NCBI GenBank assembly: GCA_025594325.1
Contig: JANHCV010000015.1
Coordinates: 496,001 to 560,000, forward strand
DNA from: Blastocladiella emersonii ATCC 22665
Lineage: Eukaryota > Fungi > Blastocladiomycota
Direction of reading: 5' to 3'
DNA: 64,000 nt
Shown here in pieces: positions 28,376-47,796 of this stretch. Within the stretch, counting starts at the first letter, position 1. The number at the start of each line of letters is the position of its first letter. The notes under the pieces are model-generated. The model was given only the letters and a program-made list of their open reading frames with translations. It was not told the origin of the DNA and did no database searches. The position numbers and the translations under genes are program-made.

Positions 28376-28635
28376 TTTGGTCAGCACTCCTTGGCGCTGC
28401 TCCTTGACACAGACGCCCGTTATAGCAATTTTTGATACACTGCCTCGCATCATCCGAGTGTCTATAGCAAGTTTACGATGCTGAGGGCTCGGTGAGCCTG
28501 CCTGAGGTCGCTCGCCCGGCGCGCGCGCGACGCGACATTCACGTGCGCGTGGCGGACACGTGATGCGGTTCGTCACTGCCAATCTTCGCGCTCGCGGTCC
28601 CGCGTCGCGCTCGCTCTCCGAGAACGGCCGTTTCC

Positions 28636-30042
28636 GTGTCAAACCAACGAAGAAAAAAATCGAAGACTAAGGGCAACGTGCCCCGCGGCGCTTCCCAAAC
28701 CCCGGTGTCGCCTTCATTCGCGCCGACCGTGCTGGGGCCTGTGCTTCTCGGTGACAAGACCTCGGACCCGTACTTGCCCTTCGGCCGGTCCTATCCGCGC
28801 GACCTGCTCCTGTACCACAACCCGCGCGTCTTCAAGAAGCTTAACGTCCTTGCAGTCTAGCACTTCAACCTACGCGATGTCGCGCATACCATCGGCGAGG
28901 CCAAGCGCAAGTACGGCACCGCGGAGCTCGACTTGTGCTCGCCAATACACACCCCGAAGTCCTTGCGCGCGACTTGCTGGTGCTCCAGGCGATCTCCACC
29001 GGCGAGCTTGATGGCGAGGTCATCCCCGCCCGCTTTCTCGGTCAGCTCTACTTTTTGACGGTTTTCGAACCCGAGGCTCGCACTTTCTGGGATCAGCAGA
29101 TGCGTTCGTGCCTCACCGTGGACTGGAGCCGTCCGACAGCCCGTGTTCGTGTGCTTGACGGGGAAACGCTCCGCGCGGTGCGTTGCTGCTGGGAATCGTG
29201 GCTTGCAAACGATTGGTTGTTCGAGCAACTTCACTCTAAGCGTGGTGAAATTTACGCGACTGTTCAACACGCTTCTGCTCGTCAGGCTCAGGAGCTTCTC
29301 TTCGCGACTTCAACTACGCGGTTTTTGCAACGCTACCACGATGCCGGATACCCGCGTCGTCCAAAGACTCGTGATCTTTTTTTTGCAACTTCTTGATGAA
29401 ACGGTCTCTGGCATGTACTTGGGCGTCAAGTCCCCGGCCGGGGACGAACCGAACTTTGCCATCAACCCGAGGATGCTCCGCCTCGGTCCCGATGACAAGT
29501 TTCGCTTCTCAAACCAGCCTGATCTCTCGCCCCTGGATGTTCTCCACGCCAATGATACGGAAGCGCAGGCGCTAATTGTTTGGACCAGCACCGCTTTGCT
29601 CGACGCCCTCTTACCCGTGTCTGGTCCTGATTGCGAGGCGCAACGCGACGGCGCTTACCCGCCAGTCACCGACTGGAGCGAGAAACCCACTCCGCCCAAG
29701 TTCCAATGCCGCGTCACGCTTTGCGCGGTCAATCCGCTGACCGTCATGGAGTCGTTCGTTCCCGTTGGATCGCTTGCTTCCGTATTTACAAAATCCGTGG
29801 ACTACTCGGCGGCCACTCGGTCCATGGCGAAGCAGCGCACAATTGTGCCTGTCAAACACGTCGTCGAGGATGTTGATGCGGTCATCCTCCACCTCGACGT
29901 TCCGCTCAGGCAGCGTGCGGAGCTCATCTGCGGCTCCTCGTATGGCGGCGGAAACGGCTGTGTCGTTGAGCTTGCCATTTCCGGCAGAGGTACCCAAATC
30001 TATCAATTCTCGTACCCCATGGAACTCGCAAATGATGGAAAT
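28636..30042 (+). pseudogene. DUF4470-like family copy B, 5' part (interrupted by the PLV)
   Basis: Homologous to copies A and C; stop at 28858-28860, frameshifts near 28935 and 29395, large internal deletion joining VMES to VPVGSLAS. Confidence 0.8.
30038..30042. other. Left target-site duplication GAAAT
   Basis: Identical to 45377-45381; directly abuts the TG terminus. Confidence 0.9.
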
Positions 30043-30068
30043 TGCCGTATCCCTTAAGGGATACGGCA
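30043..30068. repeat. Perfect 26-bp terminal palindrome TGCCGTATCCCTTAAGGGATACGGCA
   Basis: Read directly; identical copy at 45351-45376. Confidence 0.97.
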
Positions 30069-30885
30069 CACGGCTGCCCTTAGGGACTTCGCCTCTGGAC
30101 TCTATCCACCCGGGCTAACCCACGTGATATCTCATTGCTTACCCCGAGTGACTCATAATGAATATAGCGATATCCTTAGGGATTTCGCCACCCGGATCGG
30201 AGGCCGAAGGCCGAAGCAGGTGGGCGGGAGGGTGGGTGGAAGGGAGGGGCGAGCGGTCCAGGAGTGAGTCCCTGACCTGACCCCTGAGCCCGTCCCTGAC
30301 CAACCGCTCGGGCTGACCATTGCTTACCCCGAGCGGTCGGCGGCGGCCGGCGAGCGCAGCGAGACGAAGAGCAGCGCAGCTGCGGCTACCCACTGACAGA
30401 GTTCCCTGGTCTGGTCCCTGAGCACAGCTGCAAGTCGATCTGTGAGCAGTCCCCGAGCCGGCCCACGACTTGGTTGGCGACTTGGTCGCGGCAGTAGGTC
30501 CACAAGAGCCCTCGGATAAATTCCACGGGCGCTCAACGGTCGCTTCAGCGGTTGGGTCAGCGGCCAGCTCCCGGTTGCTCACCCCAATCATGTCCTGATC
30601 CTGTCCTGATCCTGTCCATTAAGTTGCTCGGGGTAAGCCATGGACACCATTGACTTTGATCCTGTCCACTCTATTTGCTCGGGGTGAGCAACGGACACCA
30701 TGGACACCATCTTTTATAAACTTTGAAAAGTCAAAGAAGATGGTGACACAGAAGTCGTCGTTTGTGCGTCATGTCGTAGATCCACCGGACCTTTTCAAAT
30801 GATGGTGTCCATGGTGTCCATCGTGTCCATGGCTTACCCCGAGCGAGTTTCAATGGATGCGATCCTGTCCATCGTGTCCATGGCT
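30043..30885 (+). repeat. Left terminal inverted repeat (~843 bp)
   Basis: Reverse complement of 44535-45376. Differences spotted: substitutions at 30310 and 30772 and a short patch near 30845. The ORF track gives identical 150-aa translations in both TIRs. Confidence 0.95.
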
Positions 30886-31031
30886 TACGGCGAACGGTTC
30901 AATAAAGTGCCCGTTGAGGCGATCCTGTCCGTGGCCACGGCGAACGGTCTCGGTCAGCTCCTTGGCCGTCAGCGACCTGGTCAGCGACTTGGTCAGCGAC
31001 TCGGTTAGCGGACAGTTCAGCAATGGGTCGG

Positions 31032-31392
31032 CGGTCGCTTCAGCAGTCGGGGCAGCGGCCAGATCCCGGTTGCTCACCCCAATCATGTCCAATCATGTCC
31101 TGATCCTGTCCATTAAGTCGCTCGGGGTAAGCCATGGACACCATCGGCTTTGATCCTGTCCACTCTATTTGCTCGGGGTGAGCAACGGACACCATGGACA
31201 CCATCTTTTATAAACTTTGAAAAGGCGAAGAAGATGATGACACAGAAGTCGGCGTTTGTGCGTCACGTCGTAGATCCATTGGACCTTTTCAAATGATGGT
31301 GTCCATGGTGTCCATCGTGTCCATGGCTTACCCCAAGCGCTTTCAATGGATGCGATCCTGTCCATCGTGTCCATGGCTTACGGCGAACGGTT
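31032..31392 (+). repeat. ~360-bp direct-repeat copy of the inner part of the left TIR (30537-30899)
   Basis: Co-linear with scattered substitutions; rich in TGTCCAT/ATGGACA and GCT(T/C)ACCCC motifs. Confidence 0.9.
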
Positions 31393-31441
31393 TGTAAAAC
31401 AAAAGGTACAAAGTATATTCAAAGCATTCAGAGTGATCCTG

Positions 31442-33757
31442 TTACTCCTCGTCGCTGTCAATGTCCATGGGCGAGAGGTAAGTGTACACAGTGTTGCGGC
31501 GACCAGTTGTGCGTCGCGTCGACTTGAAGAGCGGCTTTGAGGTGATAGGGTGAAGTGCCTTGGGGAACTTGGCGCCAAATGCCTTCTGGGACACGGTTGA
31601 GCGGCCAGGGAAGCGCTGCTCGTTGTAAGCGCGGTACATGTCGTAGACCTCCAAGGCCTCGAGCTCCCGCGTGACCTGCACATCCTGGCCACGGTTGGTG
31701 AGACCAACAGGGAAGCCGTCGTACTCAACGACTTCCTTGAGCAGCGCGCTGATTGGATCCATGCTTGCCGCCACCACGTCGTCGCGGTCCTTGTTGCGCG
31801 GGAAGTCGGCCAGATCAATGTGCGAGAGGTCGACGCGGCGCAGGTACGTGAAGATCTCGTTGGCGTGCGCCTTGAAAAACGCCTTGAGCGCCTTGAAGTA
31901 CGGGCGGTTCCGGCGGCGGAGGTTGGACATCTCAAGGACGAACTCGCGACGACCAGTATCAGTGAGCGGGAGCGGGTCGGGGTTGTTGGTTGCAAGGACA
32001 AAGTTGTTGACGTTGATTGAGGGTTTCGCGTCAATGTGCTTCTTGTTGACCATGGTCTTGCTGTCCGTGATCATGTTCTTGAGCTTGTCAAAGGCGCTTG
32101 TTCCACCCTTGCTGGACGGCATCTCGTCGAGCAGCACAAGCATCTTGTTGGCAATCTGGCTGTTGAAGGTGCCCTCAATGAACGTGGGCCTGTTGTTGAT
32201 GGACACGACGTTGCCCTCGCCAAGGATGTTGTCGGCCAGCAGCTCGTAGAACACGCCCTTGCCCGTGCCCTCGAGCCCCGTCAGGACCAGCATCACGCCG
32301 TTGGCCCGCCCCGTGGTGAGCAGCTCCTGGATCCACTTGAGGACGTACTGGTACTCGAGGTCGCGGCCGCTGCAGACCACGTCGCGGAGGTACTCGAGGT
32401 ACATGGCAATGGACTCGGGCGCAACGTCCTCGATGAGCTCCGTGGTCAGGAAGCCCTGGAACGCGTTGAAGTTTTCGACCACAAGGCCGCCCTGGTCCGC
32501 GGGGCCCCACTGCGGCGCGTCAATCTCAAAGATGCGCGCCTTGACCTGCGGCGCGTACTCGAGGACGTTGTAGCTCGACGTCACGAACTGGACGGTGTCC
32601 TTGCCAATGTCCATCTCCCACTTGTCCGTCACGGTGCGGCGAAAGTAGAACTTGCCCGTGGTGAGGTCCTTGCGGATGAACAGGCCCACGTACAGCGTGG
32701 CCGCCACCTCCCACAACTCCTTGCCCTCGTCGTCCTTGATCTTGCCAATGTGGTTGATGACGTCGTTGATCCACGGCTTCTTGTAGTTCGGGTCGCGCTC
32801 AAGCTGCTCGTTGACAAAGGCCTCCGCGTCCTCGCAGAAGAGCGGGAACTTGGCCTCCTTGGTTGGCGGGTTGCCGGCCATGACCTCCTTCTCATCCCAC
32901 TTGACGTCGAAGCCCGTGTGCTCGAGCGTGTTGGCCAACATCGCGGCAAGGAACTCAGCCGTGACGCGGTTGTCCTTCTTGACCATGAACCCATCAAACA
33001 TGAGCACGCTCGGCTCAAGGCCATGGCCGCGCGCAAACTCGATGGCGCGCATCAGGATGATCGACTCGACAGCCTGGAACAGGTTCGAGAGCACCGAGCC
33101 CATGTTGGCCCGCTTGGACGCCTTGACAATGTGGGGGAGGTCGCGGGCGAGCAGCGTGGGCAGCGTCTCGAACAGCGTCTTGTGCAGCGCCTTGAGGTCG
33201 TCGTGGAGGTTCACACGCTTCTCGTAGCTGTTGAAGATGAGCTTGAGGAACTCCCCCTTGGACGCGAGGCCCCACTTGGCCAGCGCGGCCGCGCGGTCGT
33301 CAAGGTACTGGTCAAACGCGCCGTGGTTGAGCCCATAGTGCTTGAGGACGCCGCGGAGGATCGACGGACCAGCGCCAATCATGTCGAGGTCCTGGAGCAC
33401 GCCATGGGCCAGCGGGCTGCGGAAGCGGTCCTTGTTCATGCGCTGCATCGACACAGACGTGGGGTAGAGTCGACCAAAGCGCTTCTCGATCGTGCGCGAC
33501 TTGGTGTTGAACAAGTACGCGGTCTCCTTGCGCCAGACCGAGCCCGACTTCTCAATTCGGCTCTTGTACGCGCGGAGCATCTTCTTCTCCTCGCCAATAA
33601 CGCCCAAGCTGGGCTCAAGGAGCCCATCGAGCATGCCCTTGTTGAAGTACTTGTACACCACGACCTGGCGCGAGTCATCGAACTGGGACTCGGTAGACTT
33701 GAGGGTCTCGGCAATCTTGTTCAGATGATCCATGGTCGTGTTGTTACTGTTGGCCAT
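31442..33757 (-). CDS. TVpol (family A polymerase-like primase-polymerase) fused to SF3/D5-like helicase (~771 aa)
   Basis: N-half GRLY, DLDMIGAGPSIL, FQAVESIIL, LMFDGFMV (TVpol-type motifs); C-half Walker A GLEGTGKG, Walker B VLLDEM, motif C VLATNN and GRRE; start MANSNNTT chosen from upstream motif. Confidence 0.82.
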   Translation of the reverse strand: MANSNNTTMDHLNKIAETLKSTESQFDDSRQVVVYKYFNKGMLDGLLEPSLGVIGEEKKMLRAYKSRIEKSGSVWRKETAYLFNTKSRTIEKRFGRLYPTSVSMQRMNKDRFRSPLAHGVLQDLDMIGAGPSILRGVLKHYGLNHGAFDQYLDDRAAALAKWGLASKGEFLKLIFNSYEKRVNLHDDLKALHKTLFETLPTLLARDLPHIVKASKRANMGSVLSNLFQAVESIILMRAIEFARGHGLEPSVLMFDGFMVKKDNRVTAEFLAAMLANTLEHTGFDVKWDEKEVMAGNPPTKEAKFPLFCEDAEAFVNEQLERDPNYKKPWINDVINHIGKIKDDEGKELWEVAATLYVGLFIRKDLTTGKFYFRRTVTDKWEMDIGKDTVQFVTSSYNVLEYAPQVKARIFEIDAPQWGPADQGGLVVENFNAFQGFLTTELIEDVAPESIAMYLEYLRDVVCSGRDLEYQYVLKWIQELLTTGRANGVMLVLTGLEGTGKGVFYELLADNILGEGNVVSINNRPTFIEGTFNSQIANKMLVLLDEMPSSKGGTSAFDKLKNMITDSKTMVNKKHIDAKPSINVNNFVLATNNPDPLPLTDTGRREFVLEMSNLRRRNRPYFKALKAFFKAHANEIFTYLRRVDLSHIDLADFPRNKDRDDVVAASMDPISALLKEVVEYDGFPVGLTNRGQDVQVTRELEALEVYDMYRAYNEQRFPGRSTVSQKAFGAKFPKALHPITSKPLFKSTRRTTGRRNTVYTYLSPMDIDSDEE

Positions 33758-33896
33758 GGTAAAAGTGAGACAACTTTGATGCGGAAAAACGCAGTTGGGA
33801 GCGGGGGTGGGGCCGTGCTTTTGAAGCGCCACGATTATCGCTATTGCTGCTGGCCGTGTCTGGGTACGTGTGCAGTTAGTCACTGCAAAAAGGTAT

Positions 33897-34263
33897 GGGG
33901 GTCAGGTGGGGGTCAGGTGGGGGTCAGGCGGGGGTCAGGCGGGGGTCAGGTGGGCGGTCAGGCGGGGGTCAGGTGGGCGGTCAGGTGGGCAGTCAGGTCA
34001 AGGGTGCCAGGTCGGGGGGTCAGGTCAAGGGCGCCAGGTCGGGGGGTCAGGTCAAGGGCGCCAGGTCTGAGGTCAGGGTTGGAGGTCAGGGTTGGAGGTC
34101 AGGGTCGGAGGTCAGGGTCGGAGGTCAGGGTCAGAGGTCAGGGTCGGAGGTCAGGGTCGGAGGTCAGGGTTGGAGGTCAGGGTTGGAGGGGGGGGGGTGC
34201 CTTGTTGGCATGGCCCATGACTTGCCACCACCCTGACCCTGACCCTGACCCTGACCCTGACCC
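33897..34263. repeat. GGGTCA/GGTCAGG repeat array followed by inverted (CCCTGA)5
   Basis: Many GG(G)GTCAGG units at 33897-34197 plus (CCCTGA)5CCC at 34231-34263, between divergent TVpol and YR genes. Confidence 0.9.
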
Positions 34264-34321
34264 AGGCCCAGCTACCCAGGAAAAAGAACGCTGCGTTCAA
34301 ACGCACTTGAGCCCATGGAGC

Positions 34322-34345
34322 CTTTTTGTTGACAGTCAGTAAACC
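34322..34345 (+). promoter_or_regulatory. PLV conserved upstream motif before YR (CTTTTTGTTG..TAAACC-ATG)
   Basis: Same pattern precedes most PLV genes; no tandem upstream gene here. Confidence 0.65.
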
Positions 34346-35560
34346 ATGTCGCTCGAGTCTCTTGCCTCCCAGGTCGCCGTTGCCCTTGTTCAGCATGTCG
34401 CCGCGGTTGTAGTGCAGCAAGTTGTGGACAAGCTCCAGTCCGTGTTTGGGTCGATCGACAAGCGCTTCAAGGACTTGGACAAGCGCTTCAAGGACTTGGA
34501 CAAGTGCTACAAGGACTTGGTTGAGCGCTTCAAGGACTTGGAGGCGCGACTCAAGACCGTCAAGTCACACGACCCAGACCACGGCGCTGATCAGCAAGTC
34601 ACTCCCATGGAAGTCGACACCCCGGAGCCGCCCCAAGTCAAGTTTGCCGAGCTGACCAAGGAGGCCATCGAGGCATGTGTCAACGCGCCCGTGGTGAACA
34701 AGAACGGGGAGCAGGCCGAGCTGGACGACACGGACAAGGCCAAGATGGCTCGTGTGCTCCTTGCATTTGCCAAGTCGGGCATGGATATCCACAACGTTGA
34801 TGCCGTGTCCAAGGCCGTGGCCACGTACCGCGCGACCAAGGGGTCCAAGAACGTCCAGGGACTGCAGGTTGAGACGCTCAAGGCCCTTGCCAAGTACTGT
34901 ACGTGGAACGGGTGGACCGAGCTTGGGGCCAAGTACACAGAGGCCAAGAAGCGGGACGCTGACGCCAGCGTGGACGTGCGCAAGGAGCTTGAGTCGGGCG
35001 CCCTTCCAAGCCGTGCCGTTCTGCTGGCCGCTGCGGTTGCTGCCGAAAAGTGGGACAAGCTCGAGTGCACGGGCACCATGCGCTACCTGCGTCTCTACCT
35101 CCAAGTCGTGTGCGCGACCCGCTCCGACCTCGCGTTCCTGACCACGGCCGCGAGCGACAAGTACCCGTTCTACGATCCCGCGACCAAGACGCTGGCTGGC
35201 CCTGTGTGCGTCAAGACTGAGGGTCGTGGCTACGAGTTCTCGCACGTCATTGCCGACCCCAACGTGGCAGCCGCTCTGGAGCGGGTCATGGCCAAGCGCA
35301 AGGAAGACGGCTACGAGCTGCTGTTCTTTGACTACGCGATCAAGGACCTCGAGGACGCCAAGGTGAACGCAGCCATTCGCAAGGACTGGTCCAAGACGAT
35401 CGGCCTTGCTACCAAGAAGCTCAAGTTTGACGGGTGCGGCGTGCAGCAGATCCGTCGCATTGCCACAAGTGAGAACGCAGCAGCGTACGCGGCCATCACT
35501 CAGCGCGCCAACGAGATGGGTCACAGCGTGCCCGTCGCTGTCAAGAACTACATGGTGTAA
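34346..35560 (+). CDS. Tyrosine recombinase-family protein with N-terminal coiled coil (404 aa)
   Basis: Catalytic-type series R (ATRSD), K (VKT), QQIRR, and MGHSVPVAVKNY with H..Y spacing of 9 as in Xer/Int; DKRFKDL heptads x4 (34457-34540). Confidence 0.75.
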   Translation: MSLESLASQVAVALVQHVAAVVVQQVVDKLQSVFGSIDKRFKDLDKRFKDLDKCYKDLVERFKDLEARLKTVKSHDPDHGADQQVTPMEVDTPEPPQVKFAELTKEAIEACVNAPVVNKNGEQAELDDTDKAKMARVLLAFAKSGMDIHNVDAVSKAVATYRATKGSKNVQGLQVETLKALAKYCTWNGWTELGAKYTEAKKRDADASVDVRKELESGALPSRAVLLAAAVAAEKWDKLECTGTMRYLRLYLQVVCATRSDLAFLTTAASDKYPFYDPATKTLAGPVCVKTEGRGYEFSHVIADPNVAAALERVMAKRKEDGYELLFFDYAIKDLEDAKVNAAIRKDWSKTIGLATKKLKFDGCGVQQIRRIATSENAAAYAAITQRANEMGHSVPVAVKNYMV

Positions 35561-35580
35561 CTTTTGTTGTCTTGATTTAA
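35561..35580 (+). promoter_or_regulatory. PLV upstream motif before integrase (CTTTTGTTG..TTTAA-ATG)
   Basis: Whole 20-bp spacer. Confidence 0.6.
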
Positions 35581-36693
35581 ATGTATCCGCACGAAGAGCC
35601 TTTGACTGCTGAACAGACCGAGTACTTGAAAGACTTGTACTACAAACGCGGCCACGTCGGGGTCGGGATCCGCCGGCTCTTTGACATTGTTGACCGCGAG
35701 CACACAGGGAAGCACATTTACCGCGCCCAGCTCGAGCGGTGGCTCAACGACCAGTCCGTGTGGCAGCAGTACAAGCGCGCACCACAGAAGCGGCGAGACA
35801 TTCGAAGCATCAGCTCAACCAGTCCAGGACGCAACTTCCAGCTTGACCTCATTGACATGGGCGAAAACGGTACGTACAACGGCTTCAGGTACATTCTTAC
35901 GTGTGTCGATCTGGCGAGTCGGCGCGTCTACCTACGCCCAGTCAAGACCAAGGACAAGACGCGAGAAGCATGGTCCAGCGTGGTCGCCAAGCACAGCCTT
36001 GTACCTGCCACGATCCAGACCGACAATGGCACCGAGTTCTTTGGCATTGAGGCCGGGACCGACGTCAAGCACATCAAGGGCAAGGCAGGAGTGCCATACG
36101 GTCAAGGTGTTGTTGAGCGTATGAACGGGACGGTGCGCCGGATGCTGACGCCGTGGCTGTCCATTGCTGGCAACAACGACTGGCCCAAGCACCTCGAGAC
36201 CATTGAATCTGTGATCAACAGCAGCAAGTCGAGGGCCACGGGCAGGGCGCCAAACGAGTTCCATGACATGCCACAAGAAGCGGCCAAGCAAGAGCTCAAG
36301 GAGATCCGAGCTGCCAAGGGCAAGCCCGAGGGCGACCCTCTGAGCGCGTTGTTGAAGGTAGGGGCCCAGGTCCGAGTCCGCGAGCCGTACAAGACTGCCA
36401 TGGAGGCCAAGGGGAAGCCGGTCTGGTCGCCAACTGTGAGCCAGGTCCAGGTCGTGCGCAAGGGGTCGGGCGTGAGCAATCCGAGCTACAAGGTCCAAGG
36501 CCTCAAGGGCTTCTACCCTCGAAGCGACGTCCAGCCAGTCACAGCGACCCAGGACCCGCCAACAAGGCAGCGCATGCCCCCGCGTCTTCCAAGGCTCCCT
36601 GTTGCGCGCACCCCAGTCACGCCAAGGGAGCCCTTGACCCGGGTCAGGCGCGTCCCAGTCCGAGTCCAAGAAAAGTGGGACCGCGGGCTTTAG
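35581..36693 (+). CDS. Polinton/Maverick-type retroviral-like (rve) integrase (370 aa)
   Basis: DDE triad FQLDLID / QTDNGTEF / GVVERMNGT; C-terminal LKVGAQVRV..WSPTV..SYKV segment typical of Polinton integrases. Confidence 0.92.
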   Translation: MYPHEEPLTAEQTEYLKDLYYKRGHVGVGIRRLFDIVDREHTGKHIYRAQLERWLNDQSVWQQYKRAPQKRRDIRSISSTSPGRNFQLDLIDMGENGTYNGFRYILTCVDLASRRVYLRPVKTKDKTREAWSSVVAKHSLVPATIQTDNGTEFFGIEAGTDVKHIKGKAGVPYGQGVVERMNGTVRRMLTPWLSIAGNNDWPKHLETIESVINSSKSRATGRAPNEFHDMPQEAAKQELKEIRAAKGKPEGDPLSALLKVGAQVRVREPYKTAMEAKGKPVWSPTVSQVQVVRKGSGVSNPSYKVQGLKGFYPRSDVQPVTATQDPPTRQRMPPRLPRLPVARTPVTPREPLTRVRRVPVRVQEKWDRGL

Positions 36694-38633
36694 AGCATGG
36701 TCCAGTGGCTCTGAATGATGACCTGGCAGTCGTTGGCAACTGCGACCGATGGGATCCAGATGAAAGAGTAGCTCTTGGCCACGTCAAGGTACTCAATGCT
36801 CGAGAACTGAAGGAACTGGACGTTGCCTTCAGCGCGGCACCCAGTGACAAGCGACACTGCAATCATGTCTGTCATGTTGTACAGCGCAAAGTTCACAGTG
36901 TGGGATCCAGGGAGCGCGCCGTTTGCGTAGTAGCCCTTTGCATGGACAAGGTAGTAGCCACTGACAGGGGGTTTGACGCATCCATTGATCACGGACGTGA
37001 ACGCGCCCGCCGTGGACTGGAACGCAAAGGTGGCCGGACCTGTCGACGCTGTGCCGCCAATGATCTTGCCGCCCGTGGTCACTCCGTTTGTGGAGCGGTG
37101 CTCGGCCTGAGCAACGTACCGGGTCGTGCCAGACTGCGAGTCGACGTACGCCTTGTTTGCCGCGTCGGTGCCTGCCACGGGAGCGAGGTCAAGGGTGAGC
37201 TGCCCTGTAAACCGACCAGTGCCATTGACGCGGAGCTTTTCTGTGCCAAGCGTTGCCGAGCCCACGACCACGTTGCCGCCACCTGCCACGAGGGAGACCC
37301 CGCCCGTGGTCGCAGACGCAATCTCAATGTTACCCGCCGCTGTGCATGCCAGGTTGCTTCGCAGTACGCCTGCCTGCTTAAAGTCGACGTACGTCAATGT
37401 ATTGGCAGCCGAGTCAAAGACAAGGTTTGCGCTTGTGGCATTCCGGACCAGGACGTTGGGCACAGTCAGTTGCTTGCCAACTCCAAGACCACCAGCAATG
37501 GTGACTGCTCCAGTGCTTGACGTCGAGCTGTCCGTCGTATTCGCAAAGGCAAAGGCAGCGCCGAGCCCAAGGGTGGACTGGGGGAGCGTGCCAGTGACCG
37601 AGGCCGCGCTCACGGCCATGACCTTGGCCGAGACGTCGGGGAGTCGTGCCAGGTCAATGGTCCCTGCAAGCTTGGCCGAGTCAATGCCAGATGCCAGCTT
37701 GGCGTTGGTCAGGGCCCCGTCGGCGATGCGGGCAGGGTCGAGGGTCCCAGTGAGTTTGACTGCCGACACATCCGTGACCTTGGCGTCTGTGACTGAGCCT
37801 GCTGCCAGCTGGACCGTTCCAATGGACCCAACGTTGAGCTTGGCCCCGTCAATGCCAGTTGCCAGCTTGGCGTTGGTCACGGCCGCGTCTGCCAGGACCG
37901 AGGTGCCGACTGTGCCGGCTGCCAGCTTGGACCCATCAATGCCAGTTGCCAGTTTGGCGTTGGATACGGCTGCGTCTGCCAGGGCTCCCGTCCCAATAGT
38001 CCCTGCAACAAGCTTGGACCCAGACACGGACGCGACCTTGGCATCCGTGACTGCCAGGTCAATGAGAGCTGCCGTGCCGACTGTGCCTGCCACGAGCTTG
38101 GACCCGGACACGGACGCGACCTTGGCATCAGTCACTGCGCTGTCTGCCAGGACCGAGGTCCCGACTGTGCCTGCCACAAGCTTGGACCCAGACACGGACG
38201 CGACCTTGGCATCAGTCACTGAGCCGTCTGCCAGGACCGAGGTCCCAACGGCTGGGAGGTTGGACGCACTGAGCACGCCCACGACCTTGGACGCAGACAC
38301 AGTGTCCAGCTGAGCATCAACGAGCTTGCCTGTGACCTGCCCTGCTGTAATGGTCGCGACCTTGTCGGCCGTGACGCTGGCCGGGAGCAGCTGTGCCGTG
38401 CCAACCGACTTGACAAAGAGCCCTGCTGCGCCCACGCCAAGGGTCTGGTTGTCGACCTTGGCCGAGACAGTGGTCCCTGAGACTGCCACGCCAGGGCCAG
38501 CAACAGGTGCACCGACTGTGGCATACACGGTACTGATGGCCGCGTCGACGTATGCCTTGGACACGTCCGGGACCCCTGTGGCAGACATGGTCGGAGACGC
38601 AGTACTTGAGACGTTAAAGATATTCTTGACCAT
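36690..38633 (-). CDS. Putative fibre/spike protein (~647 aa)
   Basis: ~26-aa LADxAVTxAKxA..GSKL repeats, SSSTGAVTIAGGLGVG, two KAYVD motifs, C-terminal beta-rich (C1q-like) head; stop overlaps the integrase stop. Confidence 0.7.
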   Translation of the reverse strand: MVKNIFNVSSTASPTMSATGVPDVSKAYVDAAISTVYATVGAPVAGPGVAVSGTTVSAKVDNQTLGVGAAGLFVKSVGTAQLLPASVTADKVATITAGQVTGKLVDAQLDTVSASKVVGVLSASNLPAVGTSVLADGSVTDAKVASVSGSKLVAGTVGTSVLADSAVTDAKVASVSGSKLVAGTVGTAALIDLAVTDAKVASVSGSKLVAGTIGTGALADAAVSNAKLATGIDGSKLAAGTVGTSVLADAAVTNAKLATGIDGAKLNVGSIGTVQLAAGSVTDAKVTDVSAVKLTGTLDPARIADGALTNAKLASGIDSAKLAGTIDLARLPDVSAKVMAVSAASVTGTLPQSTLGLGAAFAFANTTDSSTSSTGAVTIAGGLGVGKQLTVPNVLVRNATSANLVFDSAANTLTYVDFKQAGVLRSNLACTAAGNIEIASATTGGVSLVAGGGNVVVGSATLGTEKLRVNGTGRFTGQLTLDLAPVAGTDAANKAYVDSQSGTTRYVAQAEHRSTNGVTTGGKIIGGTASTGPATFAFQSTAGAFTSVINGCVKPPVSGYYLVHAKGYYANGALPGSHTVNFALYNMTDMIAVSLVTGCRAEGNVQFLQFSSIEYLDVAKSYSFIWIPSVAVANDCQVIIQSHWTML

Positions 38634-38653
38634 GTTTAACATAGGCAAACAGA

Positions 38654-38905
38654 ATGATTTCCAGCGACCATGACCTGAGCCTGGACGAGTGGCGGGAGCA
38701 CCTCGCCGGGACCATGCCTGTGCCAAGCAGCTGGTACAGCAAGAGCGATGAGGACAAGGCCAAGTGGCTACGGAAGCGCGACCGCAAGGCCAACCGGTAC
38801 ACGCACGTCGACAACGAGGCAGCGCGGGCTGAGCGGGTCAAGATCCGGATCTACAAGGCACTCAACGCCAAGCGCCGGGACCAGGGGGCAAAAAGCACCG
38901 TCTGA
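38654..38905 (+). CDS. Small basic PLV protein (83 aa)
   Basis: Lys/Arg-rich ORF with viral codon usage; lacks the upstream motif. Confidence 0.5.
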   Translation: MISSDHDLSLDEWREHLAGTMPVPSSWYSKSDEDKAKWLRKRDRKANRYTHVDNEAARAERVKIRIYKALNAKRRDQGAKSTV

Positions 38906-38966
38906 GGGACAAAAAGCACCTGCCACGGGGAAAAAGGTACCTGCCACGGGGAAAAAGGGTACCAAC
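38884..38966 (+). repeat. ~21-bp tandem repeat x4 (GGGGAAAAAGGTACCTGCCAC-like)
   Basis: Read directly. Confidence 0.85.
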
Positions 38967-39004
38967 AGGGGGACGTTTTATTTTCGGTCCATACAGTAAC
39001 CATC

Positions 39005-40720
39005 ATGGGCCAAAGAACAGTACCAGAGCTACTCGCAAGAGTGACCAAGGCAACCGGCGGGCGCATCACGGCAGAGCGCCTTGTAGGGCAGAAGATCAAG
39101 GCGACCATTGACGGCCGCGAGTACACGTTCCCCAATGCCAAAGAGCTCCTCGACGTCTGGGTGCCGTACATCCTTGCCTTTGACTACAAGGTGACGCCCG
39201 AGAGCTATGCCAACGACTTTGACTGCAAACGAGGCAACTCGCTGTTCTACCTCAAGCACCAGGACGGCGTCACTGGGTACGAGGTCAAGGACCTCCAGGA
39301 GCACGTCCAAGACACGATTAAAGCGTGGGAGGAGCTCGAGGCAACGGGCAAAGTCACTCGAGTCCCAGTCGCTCCACCAGCGGCAAGTCCCGGACCAGAG
39401 CCCCCCGAGTCGGCCACGGACAGCGACAGGGGTAGCAGCGAAGAGGAACGCGACGAGCTGGCAGAAGAGATCTCGCGAGCCCTGGACGTCATTGACGAGG
39501 ACGCTGTACCAGACCACTTGCTCCCCGTGCCCATCCGGCCAGTCATGCCCGAGCAGTACCCGGTCGAGGCCGGCGACTACGTTGGCCAAGACATTGACGA
39601 GTACGGCGCCATGATCCCTGGCCGGTACCTGATCCAGAACGACAATGACGGCGGCAACGACCTCCCGCCACGACTTGACGACGGCACACGCGACATTGTG
39701 GTCATGCCACCAAGCTACGGCCCCAACGTGGCACAGCGGCCGAGCGTGTACAACAAGGGCCACGTCCACCCGGCCATGGATGAGGCACGCATGATCGAGG
39801 GCTCCAAGGACTTGCAGGTCTACAACCCCGAGCGGGCGCTGACGACCACGGATGACATGGAAGTTGACGTCGTCCAGAACTTTCAACAGTTCAACCAGTT
39901 CGTCTACAACAGCTACACGCAGCAGGACACCCAGAACATTGACATGCGGCAGTTCATCACCCAGTACGAGAACAACTACTACGAGCAGAACGTGGACATG
40001 CGGCAGCAGATCCTGGTCCAGTACAACAATGACCCAAACGTCATGGCCGCGCTCGAGCTCATTGCATCGCAGTTTGCTGGGTCCCAGGTCATGCAGTACC
40101 AGGCGTACCAGGCGCTCATTGATCAGACGGCGGCCGCTCAGGGACTGGCCATGGACTCGTTTGCCAACCTCACGTCCAGGATCGTGGACACGCTCCGAGC
40201 TGAACGCAACGACTTTGTCCGCCAGATCGACGCTGGCAACCGCGCGCTCGTCTCTGAGATTGCCACGGGCATGTCCTCAGCGCTCAGCAACCAGCAGGTG
40301 CTCATGAACCAGCTTGCAAGCGGCGTCCAGGGCGCGATCCAGGGGCAGACCCAGAGCAACGAGGCCATGACCAAGACGCTCCAAGACCTTGGGTCCAAGC
40401 TGGACACTATTCCTGCACCCCAAGTCGTTGTCCAGCCTGCTGACACGAGCAGCCTCGAGGCCATGATCAGGGAGCTCGCCGCGCAAAACAATTCTGGCAG
40501 TAGTTCTAAGAAGACTGACATGCTCCTCGAACAGATCCTCAAGCAACTGGGCTACAAGAAGCCGACCGACGCGAAGCTGTTCACAGACAAGCGAGCAGCG
40601 GGTAGCGGGCTGACGGCACCCAAGATCCAGCGTCACCAGAAGATCCCTGAGCGGCCTGTCAAGCAGGTCCGCGAGACCCCAAAGCGCAGCGGCATTGTCT
40701 TTGACCTTGGCTGGGACTGA
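39005..40720 (+). CDS. Unknown PLV protein with Gln/Asn-rich coiled-coil region (571 aa)
   Basis: Long intact ORF directly upstream of the morphogenesis genes. Confidence 0.75.
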   Translation: MGQRTVPELLARVTKATGGRITAERLVGQKIKATIDGREYTFPNAKELLDVWVPYILAFDYKVTPESYANDFDCKRGNSLFYLKHQDGVTGYEVKDLQEHVQDTIKAWEELEATGKVTRVPVAPPAASPGPEPPESATDSDRGSSEEERDELAEEISRALDVIDEDAVPDHLLPVPIRPVMPEQYPVEAGDYVGQDIDEYGAMIPGRYLIQNDNDGGNDLPPRLDDGTRDIVVMPPSYGPNVAQRPSVYNKGHVHPAMDEARMIEGSKDLQVYNPERALTTTDDMEVDVVQNFQQFNQFVYNSYTQQDTQNIDMRQFITQYENNYYEQNVDMRQQILVQYNNDPNVMAALELIASQFAGSQVMQYQAYQALIDQTAAAQGLAMDSFANLTSRIVDTLRAERNDFVRQIDAGNRALVSEIATGMSSALSNQQVLMNQLASGVQGAIQGQTQSNEAMTKTLQDLGSKLDTIPAPQVVVQPADTSSLEAMIRELAAQNNSGSSSKKTDMLLEQILKQLGYKKPTDAKLFTDKRAAGSGLTAPKIQRHQKIPERPVKQVRETPKRSGIVFDLGWD

Positions 40721-40724
40721 CGCC

Positions 40725-40746
40725 CTTTTTTGTTGCTCCAAGTTAA
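40725..40746 (+). promoter_or_regulatory. PLV upstream motif before ATPase (CTTTTTTGTTG..GTTAA-ATG)
   Basis: Read directly. Confidence 0.6.
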
Positions 40747-41544
40747 ATGTACGACATTGTTGCCATTGATAACGGCTTTACACGCAACGACGACGGCGAG
40801 CCGCTGCCAATCCCCAAGCACCCGTTCACCATGAACGTCATTGGTGCCAAGGGTCAGGGCAAGTCGACGCTGATCGCGAACATGGTCTGCTTCCCGCACT
40901 TTTACAAGGGCCAGTTTGACAACATCTGGGTGTTCAACCCGACGTTCCACGCCGACGACAAGTACGAATACATTGCCAGTCAACCAATCCTGCGACCGCC
41001 CAAGAAGGAGCGCAACGTGCTGGACCCCCAGGAGCGCGACCCGGACCGGCTCAAGATCAAGCCAAACTGCATCGTCACGGACCCCGAGCAGTTCATCCCG
41101 ACCCTGCTCAAGATGCGCCAGGACCTGACCAAGACATTTGAAGAGTCTGGCAAGAAGGCGCTCCAGGACCAGCTGCTGATCATTGACGACGTGCTTGGGC
41201 TCAAGCTGCTGAGCCACAGAACGCTGACCAACTTTCTGTGCAACTCGCGGCACTTGAAGATCAGCTGCATCATTGGCGTCCAGCGGTGGTGTGCCCTGCC
41301 CAAGACTCTGCGCATCAATTGCAGCTACAGCGTCGTCTACCCAATCTATGACAAGACCGAGGTCCAGACGCTGCACAAGGAGATTGGGTTGCAGTTTGAC
41401 CTCAAAGAGTTTGAGGCCATCATTGAACAGCTCTTTGACACGCGTACTGGCAACACAAAGCGACGCTTCCTGGGCGTCAACAACCAGAACCCGCCCAAGT
41501 ACCGGCTTGTAGACAGCTTCAGCGAGTGGATCGTGAAGCAGTAG
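40747..41544 (+). CDS. A32-like (FtsK/HerA) genome-packaging ATPase (265 aa)
   Basis: Walker A IGAKGQGKS, Walker B LIIDD, SRHLKIS..VQ..LPKTLRIN typical of A32 ATPases. Confidence 0.92.
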   Translation: MYDIVAIDNGFTRNDDGEPLPIPKHPFTMNVIGAKGQGKSTLIANMVCFPHFYKGQFDNIWVFNPTFHADDKYEYIASQPILRPPKKERNVLDPQERDPDRLKIKPNCIVTDPEQFIPTLLKMRQDLTKTFEESGKKALQDQLLIIDDVLGLKLLSHRTLTNFLCNSRHLKISCIIGVQRWCALPKTLRINCSYSVVYPIYDKTEVQTLHKEIGLQFDLKEFEAIIEQLFDTRTGNTKRRFLGVNNQNPPKYRLVDSFSEWIVKQ

Positions 41545-41552
41545 ACTCTTGA

Positions 41553-41584
41553 CTTTTTTTTGTTGCCGAGTCCTAAACTAAACC
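41553..41584 (+). promoter_or_regulatory. PLV upstream motif before MCP (CT8GTTG..TAAACTAAACC-ATG)
   Basis: Read directly. Confidence 0.6.
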
Positions 41585-42805
41585 ATGTCAAGCACCGTTG
41601 CCCAGTTCTCGCAGGTCCTGTCCAAGACGCTCCCTCCCGAGATGTCGTTCAACCTGCCCAAGGAGTCTGTCTATGCCGAGCGTCAGACTGTCCAGTTCAC
41701 AGCCCAGAGTGGCCCCGAGTACATTCCTGGCAACACGGTTCGCATCCACCTCCCGCCAAACGATTACATGATGGACACGCACTGCACGTTCCTGCAGTTC
41801 AGCGCCAAGACCACCGACGCAAACGTTGCGTTTGCTGAAGGCATCTACAGTGTCATTGAGCGCGTGCGCATCACCAGCGCTGGCTCAAACCTGCTTGAGG
41901 ATCTTCCATACTACAATCTGCGTCAGCGCATTGAGGCTGGCGTGACTGTCCCGCAGTATCTCAAGGATTCATGCCTCGGCGTGGCTCAGGGCTACTATGC
42001 GTCTGGCGCTGACAAGTTTGCTGTCTCGTCCGGGCTGCACCGGTACATGATCCCTATCAAGTCGGCCCTGCTGTCGAACCAGAAGCACCTGCCCATCAAG
42101 TACACAGGCGGGCTGGTCGTCGAGATCACTCTTGCGCCTGGCATTGATGCCTGCGTGGTCAAGAACGGCGCTGTTCCAGGCTACTCAGTCAGGGACATGT
42201 GCATTGTGTCCGACGTGATCAAGCTCAACGACCAGCAGATCGCAGTAATGGACGCCGCCTTCAAGAAGCAGGGCCTGAAGCTCTTTGGAACGACGTACAC
42301 TCACCACTTCTTGAACTACTCGGTGCCCAACTCGACGCTGAACATCTGCGACCGCTCTGCCTCGCAAAAGGACATCCTGCTGTTGTTCCGCGACAATGCT
42401 GTGCTCAACGACCACTCCAAGGACTCGTTCCTTCGCGCCAAGACCATCTCAACGTACCAGTTCAACGTGGCTGGCCAACTCTTCCCTCAGAAACCCATCC
42501 GCTGTGACGACTACGCGTCCGAGGCGTTTGTTGAGCTGACCAATGCCTTCCATGGCCACGTCATTGGCGCAGGCATGATGGTCGACAAGTACAACGCGCC
42601 ATCCGAGGGTACCTTTGTCCTCGGCCGTGACCTGGAGTCGAGTCGCACTGTGGTGAGCGGCGACAAGTTGTGCAAGTCGCGGGCCGTGGACATGCAGGTC
42701 ATTGTTACCTCGAACGTGGCCCCGAACCAGCGCGTGGACGCCTTCATTGGCATTGACGTGGTCTACGAGTTCCTGCCAACTGGCGAGATCAACATCTACA
42801 AGTAA
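41585..42805 (+). CDS. Double jelly-roll major capsid protein, PLV type (406 aa)
   Basis: YIPGNTVRIHLP..MDTHCTFLQF..GIYSVIERVRI..LLEDLPYYN pattern of PLV MCPs; position between ATPase and penton. Confidence 0.85.
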   Translation: MSSTVAQFSQVLSKTLPPEMSFNLPKESVYAERQTVQFTAQSGPEYIPGNTVRIHLPPNDYMMDTHCTFLQFSAKTTDANVAFAEGIYSVIERVRITSAGSNLLEDLPYYNLRQRIEAGVTVPQYLKDSCLGVAQGYYASGADKFAVSSGLHRYMIPIKSALLSNQKHLPIKYTGGLVVEITLAPGIDACVVKNGAVPGYSVRDMCIVSDVIKLNDQQIAVMDAAFKKQGLKLFGTTYTHHFLNYSVPNSTLNICDRSASQKDILLLFRDNAVLNDHSKDSFLRAKTISTYQFNVAGQLFPQKPIRCDDYASEAFVELTNAFHGHVIGAGMMVDKYNAPSEGTFVLGRDLESSRTVVSGDKLCKSRAVDMQVIVTSNVAPNQRVDAFIGIDVVYEFLPTGEINIYK

Positions 42806-42845
42806 CGCCTGTCCTTTCTTTTCTTGCGTAGAGTTAAACCCCGCC

Positions 42846-43112
42846 ATGATCTTCCGCAACCTATGGACCAACTTTAGCAACGTGCTTGGCCAGGTCGGGT
42901 CCTTTGTCAACAAACACATGCCGACCGTCCTCAAAGGCGTCAAGACCGTGTCCAAGTTCTTTGAGCGGTCGCACAACCCCGCTGTGAGCTCCATTGCGCA
43001 GATGGTGACCAAGGGCGCTGACCTCGCCCAAGACATTCACACCTGGTACAACCGACCAACGAGCGAGATCTTTGAGGCAGACGCTGACGACACGGGGACA
43101 GCTGTACAATAA
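42846..43112 (+). CDS. Small amphipathic protein, adenovirus pVI-like (88 aa)
   Basis: MIFRNLWTNFSNVLGQVGSFVNKHM amphipathic N-terminus; lies between MCP and mCP; upstream TTAAAC motif. Confidence 0.65.
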   Translation: MIFRNLWTNFSNVLGQVGSFVNKHMPTVLKGVKTVSKFFERSHNPAVSSIAQMVTKGADLAQDIHTWYNRPTSEIFEADADDTGTAVQ

Positions 43113-43130
43113 ATTGTTGTCTTTGTTTAA

Positions 43131-43874
43131 ATGTCCGAGTACAAGACGCTAACCATCTGCAGCCGCGACCTCAAGAACGGTGTCCTGTTCCTCCCGCAGC
43201 CCCTGTCCGTGCGCGGCGTCAAGGTCAACTCGGCGTACCTCTGCAACAGCTGGCACATGGTCAACTCCAAGGCCAACAAAGTGTACCTGACGCAGAGTCG
43301 TGGCGCGCTGACGTTCCCTGGCACCATCACAGTCCCTGATGGCAACTACACGGTTGATACATTCATGGCCACGCTCAAGAGCCTGCTCAACAACGCGCCC
43401 TCGACGTACCTCTGGCAGGGCACCTGGGACGTCCAGGTCGACTCGACTACCCAGAAGATGCGCCTGGCCAACGACACGGTCGACTTTACAATTGGAACAG
43501 GGACGGCGTCGCTGAACGTCCACATGGGTTTTGTTGGAGCGTATGGCTACAGCAAGGTCCAGTACGGGTCGGCGCTGGTCAACATCTCGCCCATCAACCT
43601 GCTTCACGTCTATTCGCGCAACCTTGGCACCCGGCTCGCGGACAACATGTACAGTGCGTACCCACAAGGCAACGGCGTGCTGTGTAGCATCCACGTCACG
43701 CAACCCTTTGGCAGCTGGTTCGAGCATCGACCGCACATGGGTGACTACTTTCGCTTTGACGCGCAGGGACAGGCCCAGCAGATTGACTGCATTGATATTG
43801 ACGTGGTAGACGAGAACCTGCGCTCGGTCGACTTTCTTGGCCAGCCCTTCTACGTCGAGCTCGCGTTCATCTGA
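43131..43874 (+). CDS. Minor capsid (penton) protein, single jelly-roll (247 aa)
   Basis: ITVPDGNYT..LKSLL, HMGF, C-terminal IDCIDIDVVDENLRSVDFLG..VELAF typical of Polinton/PLV mCP. Confidence 0.85.
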   Translation: MSEYKTLTICSRDLKNGVLFLPQPLSVRGVKVNSAYLCNSWHMVNSKANKVYLTQSRGALTFPGTITVPDGNYTVDTFMATLKSLLNNAPSTYLWQGTWDVQVDSTTQKMRLANDTVDFTIGTGTASLNVHMGFVGAYGYSKVQYGSALVNISPINLLHVYSRNLGTRLADNMYSAYPQGNGVLCSIHVTQPFGSWFEHRPHMGDYFRFDAQGQAQQIDCIDIDVVDENLRSVDFLGQPFYVELAFI

Positions 43875-43905
43875 CGTTGACTTTAATTGTTGTCGTACTG
43901 TAAAC

Positions 43906-44007
43906 ATGATCCTCGAGACGCTCCTTGTCGCGACCAACGCCCTGATCCTCGTAGCCAACCTGGCCATCGTCGGGTACACAAGCAAAGTATTCCACGCCGT
44001 AGAGTAA
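43906..44007 (+). CDS. 33-aa hydrophobic micro-ORF MILETLLVATNALILVANLAIVGYTSKVFHAVE (absent from ORF track)
   Basis: Preceded by TTGTTG..TAAAC-ATG (43881-43905); single TM-like helix. Confidence 0.6.
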   Translation: MILETLLVATNALILVANLAIVGYTSKVFHAVE

Positions 44008-44267
44008 GCAACGACATGTGCTTTAAATTCTTTCTGCGAAGGCATAGTAAGACACAGGACAATGAATACTGGCTCTACTGCATCAACGCCCCGCGCACCT
44101 TCCACGAGCATCCCCTCGACTGGCCGTCCGGGCCCCCAGTCAACAGCCAACTACACGGCCATCCGCGACGTGGCCCTGCCAGGTGCCAAGGTTGTGTACA
44201 CTGTCTGCTTTGAATAGATCCTTCAAGTTAACTTGGTTAGCTACCTTGAAGCCTTTACTGGTCGCTC

Positions 44268-44420
44268 TCAGACTACCTGGCGGTACGTGTACTTGTGCCC
44301 GCAGCATGGGTACACGACTTGGACCCACAGCAGCTCGTTGTCGTAGACCCAGCTGGGAGTATCGTAGTGATCGCACGGCGGCTTGGGCAGGGGAACAATC
44401 TCTTTGATACAGCCTCGCAT
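44268..44420 (-). CDS. 50-aa Cys/His micro-ORF MRGCIKEIVPLPKPPCDH...PCCGHKYTYRQVV
   Basis: Preceded on the minus strand by CTTTGTTG..TAACC-ATG (44441-44421); possible Zn-binding pairs. Confidence 0.55.
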   Translation of the reverse strand: MRGCIKEIVPLPKPPCDHYDTPSWVYDNELLWVQVVYPCCGHKYTYRQVV

Positions 44421-44534
44421 GGTTACAGTAGTCCAACAAAGTTTAAATTGACAAACGCGTTCAACGCACTTGACCCCCGCCTGACCCCAGACCTGGCGCC
44501 CCTGACTTTGCACCCTGACCCTCCACGACTTGGC

Positions 44535-45376
44535 AGCCATGGACACGATGGACAGGATCGCATCCATTGAAAGCACTCGGGGTAAGCCATGGACACGATG
44601 GACACCATGGACACCATCATTTGAAAAGGTCCGGTGGATCTACGACGTGACGCACAAACGACGACTTCTGTGTCACCATCTTCTTTGACTTTTCAAAGTT
44701 TATAAAAGATGGTGTCCATGGTGTCCGTTGCTCACCCCGAGCAAATAGAGTGGACAGGATCAAAGTCAATGGTGTCCATGGCTTACCCCGAGCAACTTAA
44801 TGGACAGGATCAGGACAGGATCAGGACATGATTGGGGTGAGCAACCGGGAGCTGGCCGCTGACCCAACCGCTGAAGCGACCGTTGAGCGCCCGTGGAATT
44901 TATCCGAGGGCTCTTGTGGACCTACTGCCGCGACCAAGTCGCCAACCAAGTCGTGGGCCGGCTCGGGGACTGCTCACAGATCGACTTGCAGCTGTGCTCA
45001 GGGACCAGACCAGGGAACTCTGTCAGTGGGTAGCCGCAGCTGCGCTGCTCTTCGTCTCGCTGCGCTCGCCGGCCGCCGCCGACCGCTCGGGGTAAGCAAT
45101 GGTCAGCCTGAGCGGTTGGTCAGGGACGGGCTCAGGGGTCAGGTCAGGGACTCACTCCTGGACCGCTCGCCCCTCCCTTCCACCCACCCTCCCGCCCACC
45201 TGCTTCGGCCTTCGGCCTCCGATCCGGGTGGCGAAATCCCTAAGGATATCGCTATATTCATTATGAGTCACTCGGGGTAAGCAATGAGATATCACGTGGG
45301 TTAGCCCGGGTGGATAGAGTCCAGAGGCGAAGTCCCTAAGGGCAGCCGTGTGCCGTATCCCTTAAGGGATACGGCA
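44535..45376 (-). repeat. Right terminal inverted repeat (~842 bp)
   Basis: Reverse complement of 30043-30885. Confidence 0.95.
45351..45376. repeat. Perfect 26-bp terminal palindrome (right end)
   Basis: Identical to 30043-30068. Confidence 0.97.
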
Positions 45377-45381
45377 GAAAT
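45377..45381. other. Right target-site duplication GAAAT
   Basis: Identical to 30038-30042. Confidence 0.9.
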
Positions 45382-45587
45382 TACGATGCAAGCGAAACCC
45401 GGTCTTCAAGACCTTGATGCCCAGTCTTTACCGCTGCTTCCTGCTCCCGTTCTTTCCGACCAACAGAGCCGAGTACCGCGAACGTGCAAAGTCGGCTACA
45501 AGCAAGAGCATGGCTGACGTGCTTGCCTCTTACGCAAAGGACGATCGGATCCTCGAGGTTGATGGCGAGGGCGATGGCGAGCAGTAG
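45382..45587 (+). pseudogene. DUF4470-like copy B, 3' end beyond the PLV
   Basis: PVFKTLMPSLYRCFLLPFFPTNRAEYR..DDRILEVD..* matches the C-termini of copy C (PCLRSCFVLPLYPALGAEY..DDRIMELDD) and copy A (FFPTNGAEYR). Confidence 0.8.
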
Positions 45588-47688: not shown

Positions 47689-47694
47689 TATAAA
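47689..47694 (+). promoter_or_regulatory. TATA box of MTFG copy 4
   Basis: TATAAA ~108 bp upstream of ATG 47797. Confidence 0.7.
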
Positions 47695-47796
47695 GGGCGG
47701 CCGAGCCCTCGCACTTCGGATCGGATCAGCAGCAACAACAGCAAGAGCGAGCCGGCCTCACTCTACATACTCCACCGAAACCTACTCCTCATCACC

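Follow-up and report, generated by a model that had tools for sequence, protein, structure and literature searches.

An apparently intact Polinton-like virus genome integrated in the nuclear genome of the fungus Blastocladiella emersonii

The window, which is the whole 64-kb stretch of Blastocladiella emersonii ATCC 22665 DNA analysed here (assembly GCA_025594325.1), contains a 15,334-bp inserted element with the gene content of a Polinton-like virus (PLV). Its major capsid protein (MCP) gene lies on a 1.07-Mb contig, and the host belongs to the Blastocladiomycota, in agreement with the early-diverging fungal host of the original prediction, which had been made from the letters of this sequence. 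Ten open reading frames (ORFs) occupy 76% of the element, and all of them are open and uninterrupted, as had been claimed. The features are given below with their window coordinates; L001 and L011 to L014 designate other copies in the same genome, L002, L003, L009 and L015 relatives on environmental or unidentified-sample contigs, and L016 a locus of Allomyces macrogynus.

30043-45376: complete integrated element, 15,334 bp between the tips of its terminal inverted repeats (TIRs)
30038-30042: left target site duplication (TSD), GAAAT, the same as the five bases outside the right tip
30043-30885, plus strand: left TIR, starting with TG; its first 26 nt (30043-30068) form a perfect palindrome
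31032-31392, plus strand: extra subterminal copy of TIR-internal sequence, duplicating 30537-30899 with 94.5% identity, at the left end only
31442-33757, minus strand: replication protein of 771 aa, counted from the first ATG, with a C-terminal superfamily-3 (D5/P4-type) helicase
33896-34263: iteron-like array in which a 13-nt unit with a GGTCAG core recurs about 23 times, then about six ACCCTG copies in the opposite orientation
34346-35560, plus strand: recombinase-like protein, 404 aa, with an N-terminal coiled coil; possible tyrosine recombinase
35581-36693, plus strand: rve-family DDE integrase, 370 aa (PF00665, E 1e-6; IS481-type, E 6.4e-19; PHROG transposases)
36690-38642, minus strand: fibre-like protein, 650 aa from ATG (Phage_Tail_Tip, E 6.2e-8, above the cut-off; tail-fibre PHROGs)
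38654-38905, plus strand: small basic protein, 83 aa, conserved, 38% identical to its equivalent in L002
39005-40720, plus strand: Q/N-rich protein, 571 aa, conserved, without a family match
40747-41544, plus strand: A32-type packaging ATPase, 265 aa (Pox_A32, E 3.6e-13; score 50 bits, cut-off 22.8)
41585-42805, plus strand: double jelly-roll (DJR) MCP, 406 aa, from an AlphaFold2 model and fold search
42846-43112, plus strand: small protein, 88 aa, conserved, 33-47% identical to its equivalents in L002 and L009
43131-43874, plus strand: probable penton-like (minor capsid) protein, 247 aa, at the conserved place after the MCP gene and a small gene
44535-45376, minus strand: right TIR, ending with the 26-nt palindrome (45351-45376) and the CA tip
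45377-45381: right TSD, GAAAT, the same as the five bases outside the left tip

The MCP has no Pfam match and no sequence match in the PDB, and 481 relatives were found at E<=1e-3 in a full HMMER scan. Its AlphaFold2 model, built from a 71-sequence alignment, has a mean pLDDT of 89.7 and a pTM of 0.87. Among solved structures, Foldseek placed PBCV-1 Vp54 first (E 2.8e-18, TM 0.66), and the other top matches, namely the Singapore grouper iridovirus MCP, the faustovirus MCP and vaccinia D13, are all double jelly-roll proteins. The model therefore confirms the predicted DJR fold; failure to model as a double jelly-roll, named beforehand as grounds for abandoning the prediction, did not occur. Against predicted viral structures (BFVD) the top match had a TM of 0.77; giant-virus-type and unnamed viral MCPs led the matches (E 1e-18 to 1e-23), and virophage MCPs followed only at ranks 40-45 (E ~1e-12).

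Two further proteins named in the original prediction, the A32 ATPase and the fibre-like protein, were recognised by profiles scoring above their curated cut-offs. The ATPase is 40-46% identical to its environmental relatives, while an alignment search recovered one IMG/VR locus and two metagenome loci only, at 23-25% identity. The fibre ORF extends to position 38726 from a TTG and contains 84-87-nt tandem repeats encoding 28-aa repeats. The 247-aa protein had been called a penton. In PLVs the penton gene is placed after the MCP gene and a small gene, which is where the 247-aa gene lies, and homologues with 29-38% identity are placed likewise in five other elements (L002, L003, L009, L015 and L016). 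No match was found in Pfam, PHROGs or the PDB, including a PDB profile search, and the protein is regarded as a probable penton from its position and conservation. Word-index protein searches with the MCP, penton-like and recombinase-like proteins returned almost only B. emersonii paralogues.

The replication ORF extends to position 33883 from a GTG. Residues ~490-800 of the full ORF match DUF5906 (E 2.2e-20), RNA_helicase, TIGR01613 and the PHROG families for DNA primase and primase-helicases (E 6e-29), which confirms the helicase half of the predicted TVpol-helicase as a superfamily-3 domain by profile comparison. The N-terminal ~480 aa are conserved in Blastocladiella, Allomyces and L015 (65 columns are invariant among the three sequences) and gave no match in Pfam, PHROGs, the PDB or phage genomes, nor with a profile of the three sequences. 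The TVpol half of the claim went unconfirmed in these searches, and a primase domain would fit this part of the protein equally well.

The rve integrase was also recovered as predicted. Its PF00665 score of 29.4 bits falls just under the curated cut-off of 32.6, and its homologues in L002 and L015 carry precomputed PF00665 annotations. What we take to be the DDE triad of two aspartates and a glutamate can be read by eye in the sequence. The profile matches, that to the IS481 type included, confirm the assignment to the rve/DDE integrases at the sequence level.

The adjacent recombinase-like gene was less tractable, and the tyrosine recombinase of the original prediction went unconfirmed: the protein had no match in Pfam, NCBIfam, PHROGs, the PDB (single sequence and profile) or phage genomes, and its AlphaFold2 model, with a pLDDT of 55.6, had no fold match at E<=1e-3. 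The best match was Cre (E 0.03), and a large part of the top 40 sub-threshold matches consists of Cre, Tn1549 Int, TelA, XerA, XerD and lambda Int. Tyrosine recombinases share a catalytic pattern of Arg, Lys, Arg, His and Tyr, and residues R258, K288, R370, H393 and Y402 are present in that order. Paralogues in B. emersonii have 54-79% identity (word-index search), and weak homologues lie at equivalent places in Allomyces (E 1e-7) and L015 (E 1e-3). R370 and Y402 are invariant in these distant homologues; R258 is replaced by Q in the Allomyces copy and H393 by N in L015. The evidence is suggestive, and we lean slightly towards a tyrosine-recombinase fold. The mosaic gene set proposed originally is accordingly supported for the rve integrase, while its other two parts, TVpol and the tyrosine recombinase, went unverified.

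The boundaries of the element are sharply defined and agree with the predicted 15.3-kb length, TIRs and TSD. An inverted-repeat search gave arms of 801 nt with 100% complementarity (30043-30843 and 44576-45376), and BLAST extension lengthened the TIRs to 843 nt at 99.4% identity. The tips are TG and CA and the TSD is 5 bp. BLAST detected no further copy or fragment of the element within the window. Each TIR contains a 150-aa ORF without any match, which is probably not a gene.

The element lies in a tandemly duplicated host gene, whose copies occupy 24665-28014 and 28633-30042 plus 45393-45563, ~3.84 kb apart from start to start. The left flank (28633-29820) parallels 24780-26934, and 16 nt past the element the sequence is again similar to the end of the first copy, with 45393-45563 aligning to 27838-28008 (tblastx E 5e-6). 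Since this coding similarity picks up after the element, the insertion is located inside the second paralogue. The copy bearing the insertion is shorter than the first copy in that region.

A search of the B. emersonii genome for other copies, proposed with the original prediction, revealed a family: at least 18 capsid-length gene models, counted by locus tag, are spread over at least 10 contigs, which are 1-2.8 Mb long. Five copies compare with the window copy as follows.

L001: 91% nucleotide identity over 9.9 kb; no breaks, and the nine shared genes are open
L011: ~78%; two stops in the integrase, one stop and one frame change in the 571-aa gene
L012: ~78%; one stop in the helicase and one in the integrase
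L013: ~78%; one frame change in the recombinase-like gene
L014: 90%; one stop each in the integrase, the 571-aa gene, the ATPase and the MCP, and one frame change in the recombinase-like gene

The ratio of nonsynonymous to synonymous substitution rates (dN/dS) between the window copy and L001 is 0.03-0.27 in eight genes and 0.46 in the recombinase-like gene. The lowest and highest of the eight are the 88-aa gene (0.03) and the 83-aa gene (0.27); the 571-aa gene has 0.15 and the penton-like gene 0.12, and the capsid, penton-position, ATPase and fibre genes together span 0.12-0.19. These low ratios indicate that the genes, including those of the capsid, were probably under selection while the window copy and L001 diverged. 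Such selection between copies is what would be expected of a replicating virus lineage that inserts repeatedly. Because its TIRs are identical and it has no breaks, the window copy can be placed among the youngest of the family, as the claim of a recent integration had it.

The replication module has been exchanged within the family, since the helicase gene is replaced in L001 (1-2765) and L011 (1-2403) by an unrelated large ORF, open over at least 489 aa and 801 aa, respectively. This replacement ORF has no Pfam match and no similarity to the window helicase.

In base composition, GC at third codon positions is 0.71-0.88 in all ten ORFs, and two host ORFs measured 0.64 and 0.74. The GC content of the whole element is 59%, against ~45% in the environmental relatives. 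This composition suggests a long residence in high-GC hosts.

The public gene models of other copies (P0003, P0010, P0161, P0176, P0177; L012-L014) include some that join the 88-aa and penton genes through a predicted intron into a 303-aa product, some that fuse the MCP to the next genes (622-631 aa) and some that shorten it (380-387 aa); in copy P0010 the frames of the 88-aa and penton genes are continuous. All three kinds of model are artefacts of eukaryotic gene finders applied to virus-type genes.

The 26-nt palindrome at the tips, TGCCGTATCCCTTAAGGGATACGGCA at both TIR ends, folds as single-stranded DNA with -12.1 kcal/mol (z -7). The right ends of five other copies (L001 and L011-L014) carry an equivalent 26-mer, in elements whose genes are only ~78-91% identical. 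In two copies the third base and its mirror position have changed together, so that the symmetry is kept, and one copy differs at the last base without a matching change at the mirror position. Because the paired changes preserve the symmetry, the palindrome itself is under selection; it may act as an end that folds into a hairpin or as a symmetric site for a protein.

Outside the B. emersonii genome, the nearest MCPs are 30-39% identical and come from Logan, JGI and ENA assemblies. Intact relatives with the same gene order were found on contigs of ~45% GC (L002, L003, L009 and L015), and the order fibre (minus strand), ~85 aa, 530-690 aa, A32 ATPase, MCP, ~90 aa and ~250 aa is conserved in these four and in L016. 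The place of the 571-aa gene is taken in the four contigs by a gene of 531-691 aa. Two different relatives, L002 and L003, were present in a single run (ERR3281035). L002 and L015 each add an HNH endonuclease gene, and L015 also has a D12-type DNA methyltransferase gene.

The Allomyces macrogynus locus, with the MCP AMAG_17996, has the window order of helicase (minus strand), recombinase-like gene, rve integrase, ATPase, MCP and penton. Compared with the window proteins, its helicase is 44% identical over 770 residues, its MCP and ATPase 30% and its penton-position protein 29%. The Allomyces copy is decayed: three genes are broken, the helicase by a single stop and the integrase and MCP by one frame change apiece, whereas the window copy is fully open and has perfect TIRs. 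Several environmental MCPs (39%) are nearer to the window MCP than the Allomyces MCP is.

Bellas & Sommaruga (2021, PMC7805220) described a PLV integrated in Spizellomyces punctatus and, from Allomyces macrogynus, PLV genes for the MCP, ATPase and helicase, the very genes seen at the locus above; these PLVs are likewise endogenous in zoosporic fungi and share the MCP, ATPase and helicase with the present element. PLV-type ATPases were reported from several chytrid genomes in a 2026 preprint. No literature linking Blastocladiella with polintons or capsid genes was found, and the genome paper is silent on viruses. The B. emersonii family therefore appears to be undescribed, as had been suggested, while the novelty of the lineage was overstated: it is not wholly new, having already been glimpsed in Allomyces.

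By its DJR MCP, its A32 ATPase, its length of 15,334 bp with TIRs and the lack of a match to DNA polymerase B (PolB), the element belongs with the PLVs, whose genomes measure about 14-40 kb and have TIRs or a circular map. Its rve integrase, the long TIRs with a short TSD, and the module of DJR MCP, probable penton and A32 ATPase are shared with Polintons/Mavericks (Polintoviricetes), and it differs from them in that no protein-primed PolB and no adenain-like protease was detected, the replication gene being a helicase fusion instead. The TSD of classical Polintons is 6 bp, against 5 bp here. Virophages such as mavirus and Sputnik resemble the element in genome size and capsid module, and mavirus, which integrates into its host, likewise possesses TIRs and an rve integrase; unlike virophages, the element has no detected cysteine protease, and its MCP model is nearer to giant-virus-type MCPs. 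Aquatic PLVs with helicase-fusion replicases and tyrosine recombinases have been described (Yutin 2015, PMC4642659; bioRxiv 10.64898/2026.10.13.758929), and the element is similar to them in its compact 15-kb genome, its helicase-fusion replicase and its possible tyrosine recombinase. DDE integrases are reported to pair with PolB, and tyrosine recombinases with PolA/AEP replicases (bioRxiv 10.64898/2026.10.13.758929); the element, in contrast, has a DDE integrase beside the recombinase-like gene and a helicase fusion, a combination that is less usual if the recombinase call is right.

Taken together, these observations make it very probable that the element is a genuine, intact and young PLV genome integrated in the B. 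emersonii nuclear genome. In the life cycle that we propose, the DDE integrase would join the TG...CA ends of a linear double-stranded DNA genome to host cuts staggered by 5 bp, giving rise to the TSD, and the family would have spread by repeated insertions of a lineage with capsid genes under selection. The helicase-containing protein would start replication, perhaps at the adjoining iteron-like array, and a short shared motif just upstream of most genes would serve as promoter. The ATPase would package the DNA in a DJR capsid that has pentons at its vertices and bears a fibre, and the recombinase-like protein could resolve the ends or provide a second route of integration.

The putative control sequences were seen as follows. 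The iteron-like array is situated between the divergent replication and recombinase-like genes and may be an origin or control region; short repeats akin to it are also present at 44467-44520, close to where the right TIR has its inner edge. Spacers of only 18-43 nt precede the rve, ATPase, MCP, 88-aa and penton genes. The motif TTTTGTTG or ATTGTTG is found ~10-20 nt upstream of five genes (recombinase-like, rve, ATPase, MCP and penton), followed by TAAA(C/T) beside the ATG, and the window contains 17 occurrences of TTTGTTG, where 4.8 would be expected. In five related elements a motif of the (T)GTAA[ACG] type is enriched before gene starts, with P values, which are generous, of 3e-5 to 9e-7. 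Between the penton gene and the right TIR, ~660 nt (43875-44534) contain no convincing ORF, yet are ~91% identical to L001; this could be either a constrained non-coding region or small unrecognised genes.

Several points weigh against the reading as an intact, young virus genome. No PolB and no maturation protease was found in searches of ORFs of at least 140 aa against Pfam, NCBIfam and PHROGs; therefore, replication and maturation must use unrecognised or outside functions. The penton, the polymerase or primase domain and the recombinase are candidate assignments, and the PLV is known here from genome sequence alone. The identity of the TIRs could instead be kept by gene conversion. The comparison within the family covers six copies, and the right-hand parts only, and the upstream-motif pattern was picked after inspection and set against a background of the whole element, not of intergenic sequence.

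The best-surviving alternative refines the PLV reading rather than replacing it. The element could be a virophage-like satellite, expressed and replicated only with the machinery of a giant virus of the Mycodnaviridae type, and by analogy with integrated mavirus in Cafeteria it may protect the host population. Neither PolB nor RNA polymerase was found in the element, and the very short spacers and shared gene-proximal motif (TTTTGTTG and the (T)GTAA[ACG] type) would fit virophage-like control. Giant-virus MCPs occur in three of seven Blastocladiomycota genomes, with active infection in Allomyces (Mycodnaviridae; PMC13533422), and a related PLV is present in Allomyces macrogynus. On the other hand, the window contains no giant-virus gene, the main text of the Mycodnaviridae paper (PMC13533422) does not mention Blastocladiella, no link between such a virus and this genus was met in the literature examined, and some PLVs need no helper, TSV being described in a preprint as a nuclear-replicating lytic virus. 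Dependence of this kind is possible, and somewhat unlikely. A more elaborate version, in which the element would be the fungal counterpart of integrated virophages, expressed only in infections of the Mycodnaviridae type, with the 26-bp palindromes as hairpin ends for replication or for resolution with the recombinase-like protein, is given little credence; a hairpin-end mechanism of that sort was not found in the PLV literature examined.

It could also be supposed that the element is in practice a capsid-less transposon, spread by its DDE integrase only, with the capsid genes as disused leftovers. The TIRs, TSD and DDE integrase make up a full transposon kit, and there are many copies in the genome, several of them broken. 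However, in the one copy pair compared, dN/dS is low for the capsid, penton-position, ATPase and fibre genes, the capsid-module genes are open in both the window copy and L001, and intact relatives exist on short environmental contigs of differing base composition. Since capsid genes appear to be under selection in a spreading lineage, the element would be a virus or a capsid-dependent element and not a passive repeat, and the transposon explanation is very unlikely. An assembly artefact or contamination, in which foreign DNA was misjoined into a fungal contig, is extremely unlikely, because both junctions share the 5-bp duplication and the similarity to the host paralogue runs on across the insertion, while the contigs with related copies number at least 10, each 1-2.8 Mb long, and third-position GC is high like that of the two host ORFs.

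DNA viruses of fungi are few, and fungal PLVs have been known only from the brief mentions in Spizellomyces and Allomyces. The integrated PLV of B. emersonii provides a complete and apparently young copy with defined ends, within a multi-copy family, in a laboratory model fungus with a contiguous genome. As the lineage is shared with Allomyces, a genus with active giant viruses, it becomes approachable from available sequence and expression data whether fungi, as protists do, have a triangle of giant virus, small virus and host. Features worth describing include the exchange of the replication gene between copies, the DDE integrase beside a second recombinase-like gene, and the selected palindromes at the tips.

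No tRNA or Rfam family was found anywhere in the window. Outside the element, the region 54001-57000 has 70-75% GC, the maximum of the window, and contains long overlapping ORFs on both strands; because of this base composition, ORF lists are unreliable there. At 50473-52068 on the minus strand, a 531-aa host ORF contains a DUF4470 domain (E 1.7e-9). Three ORFs rich in Gly, Asn, Tyr and His, with 18-nt periodic repeats, were observed at 23959-24540, 46179-46805 and 47593-48411; they are paralogous on either side of the insertion and may represent a host family of repetitive proteins.

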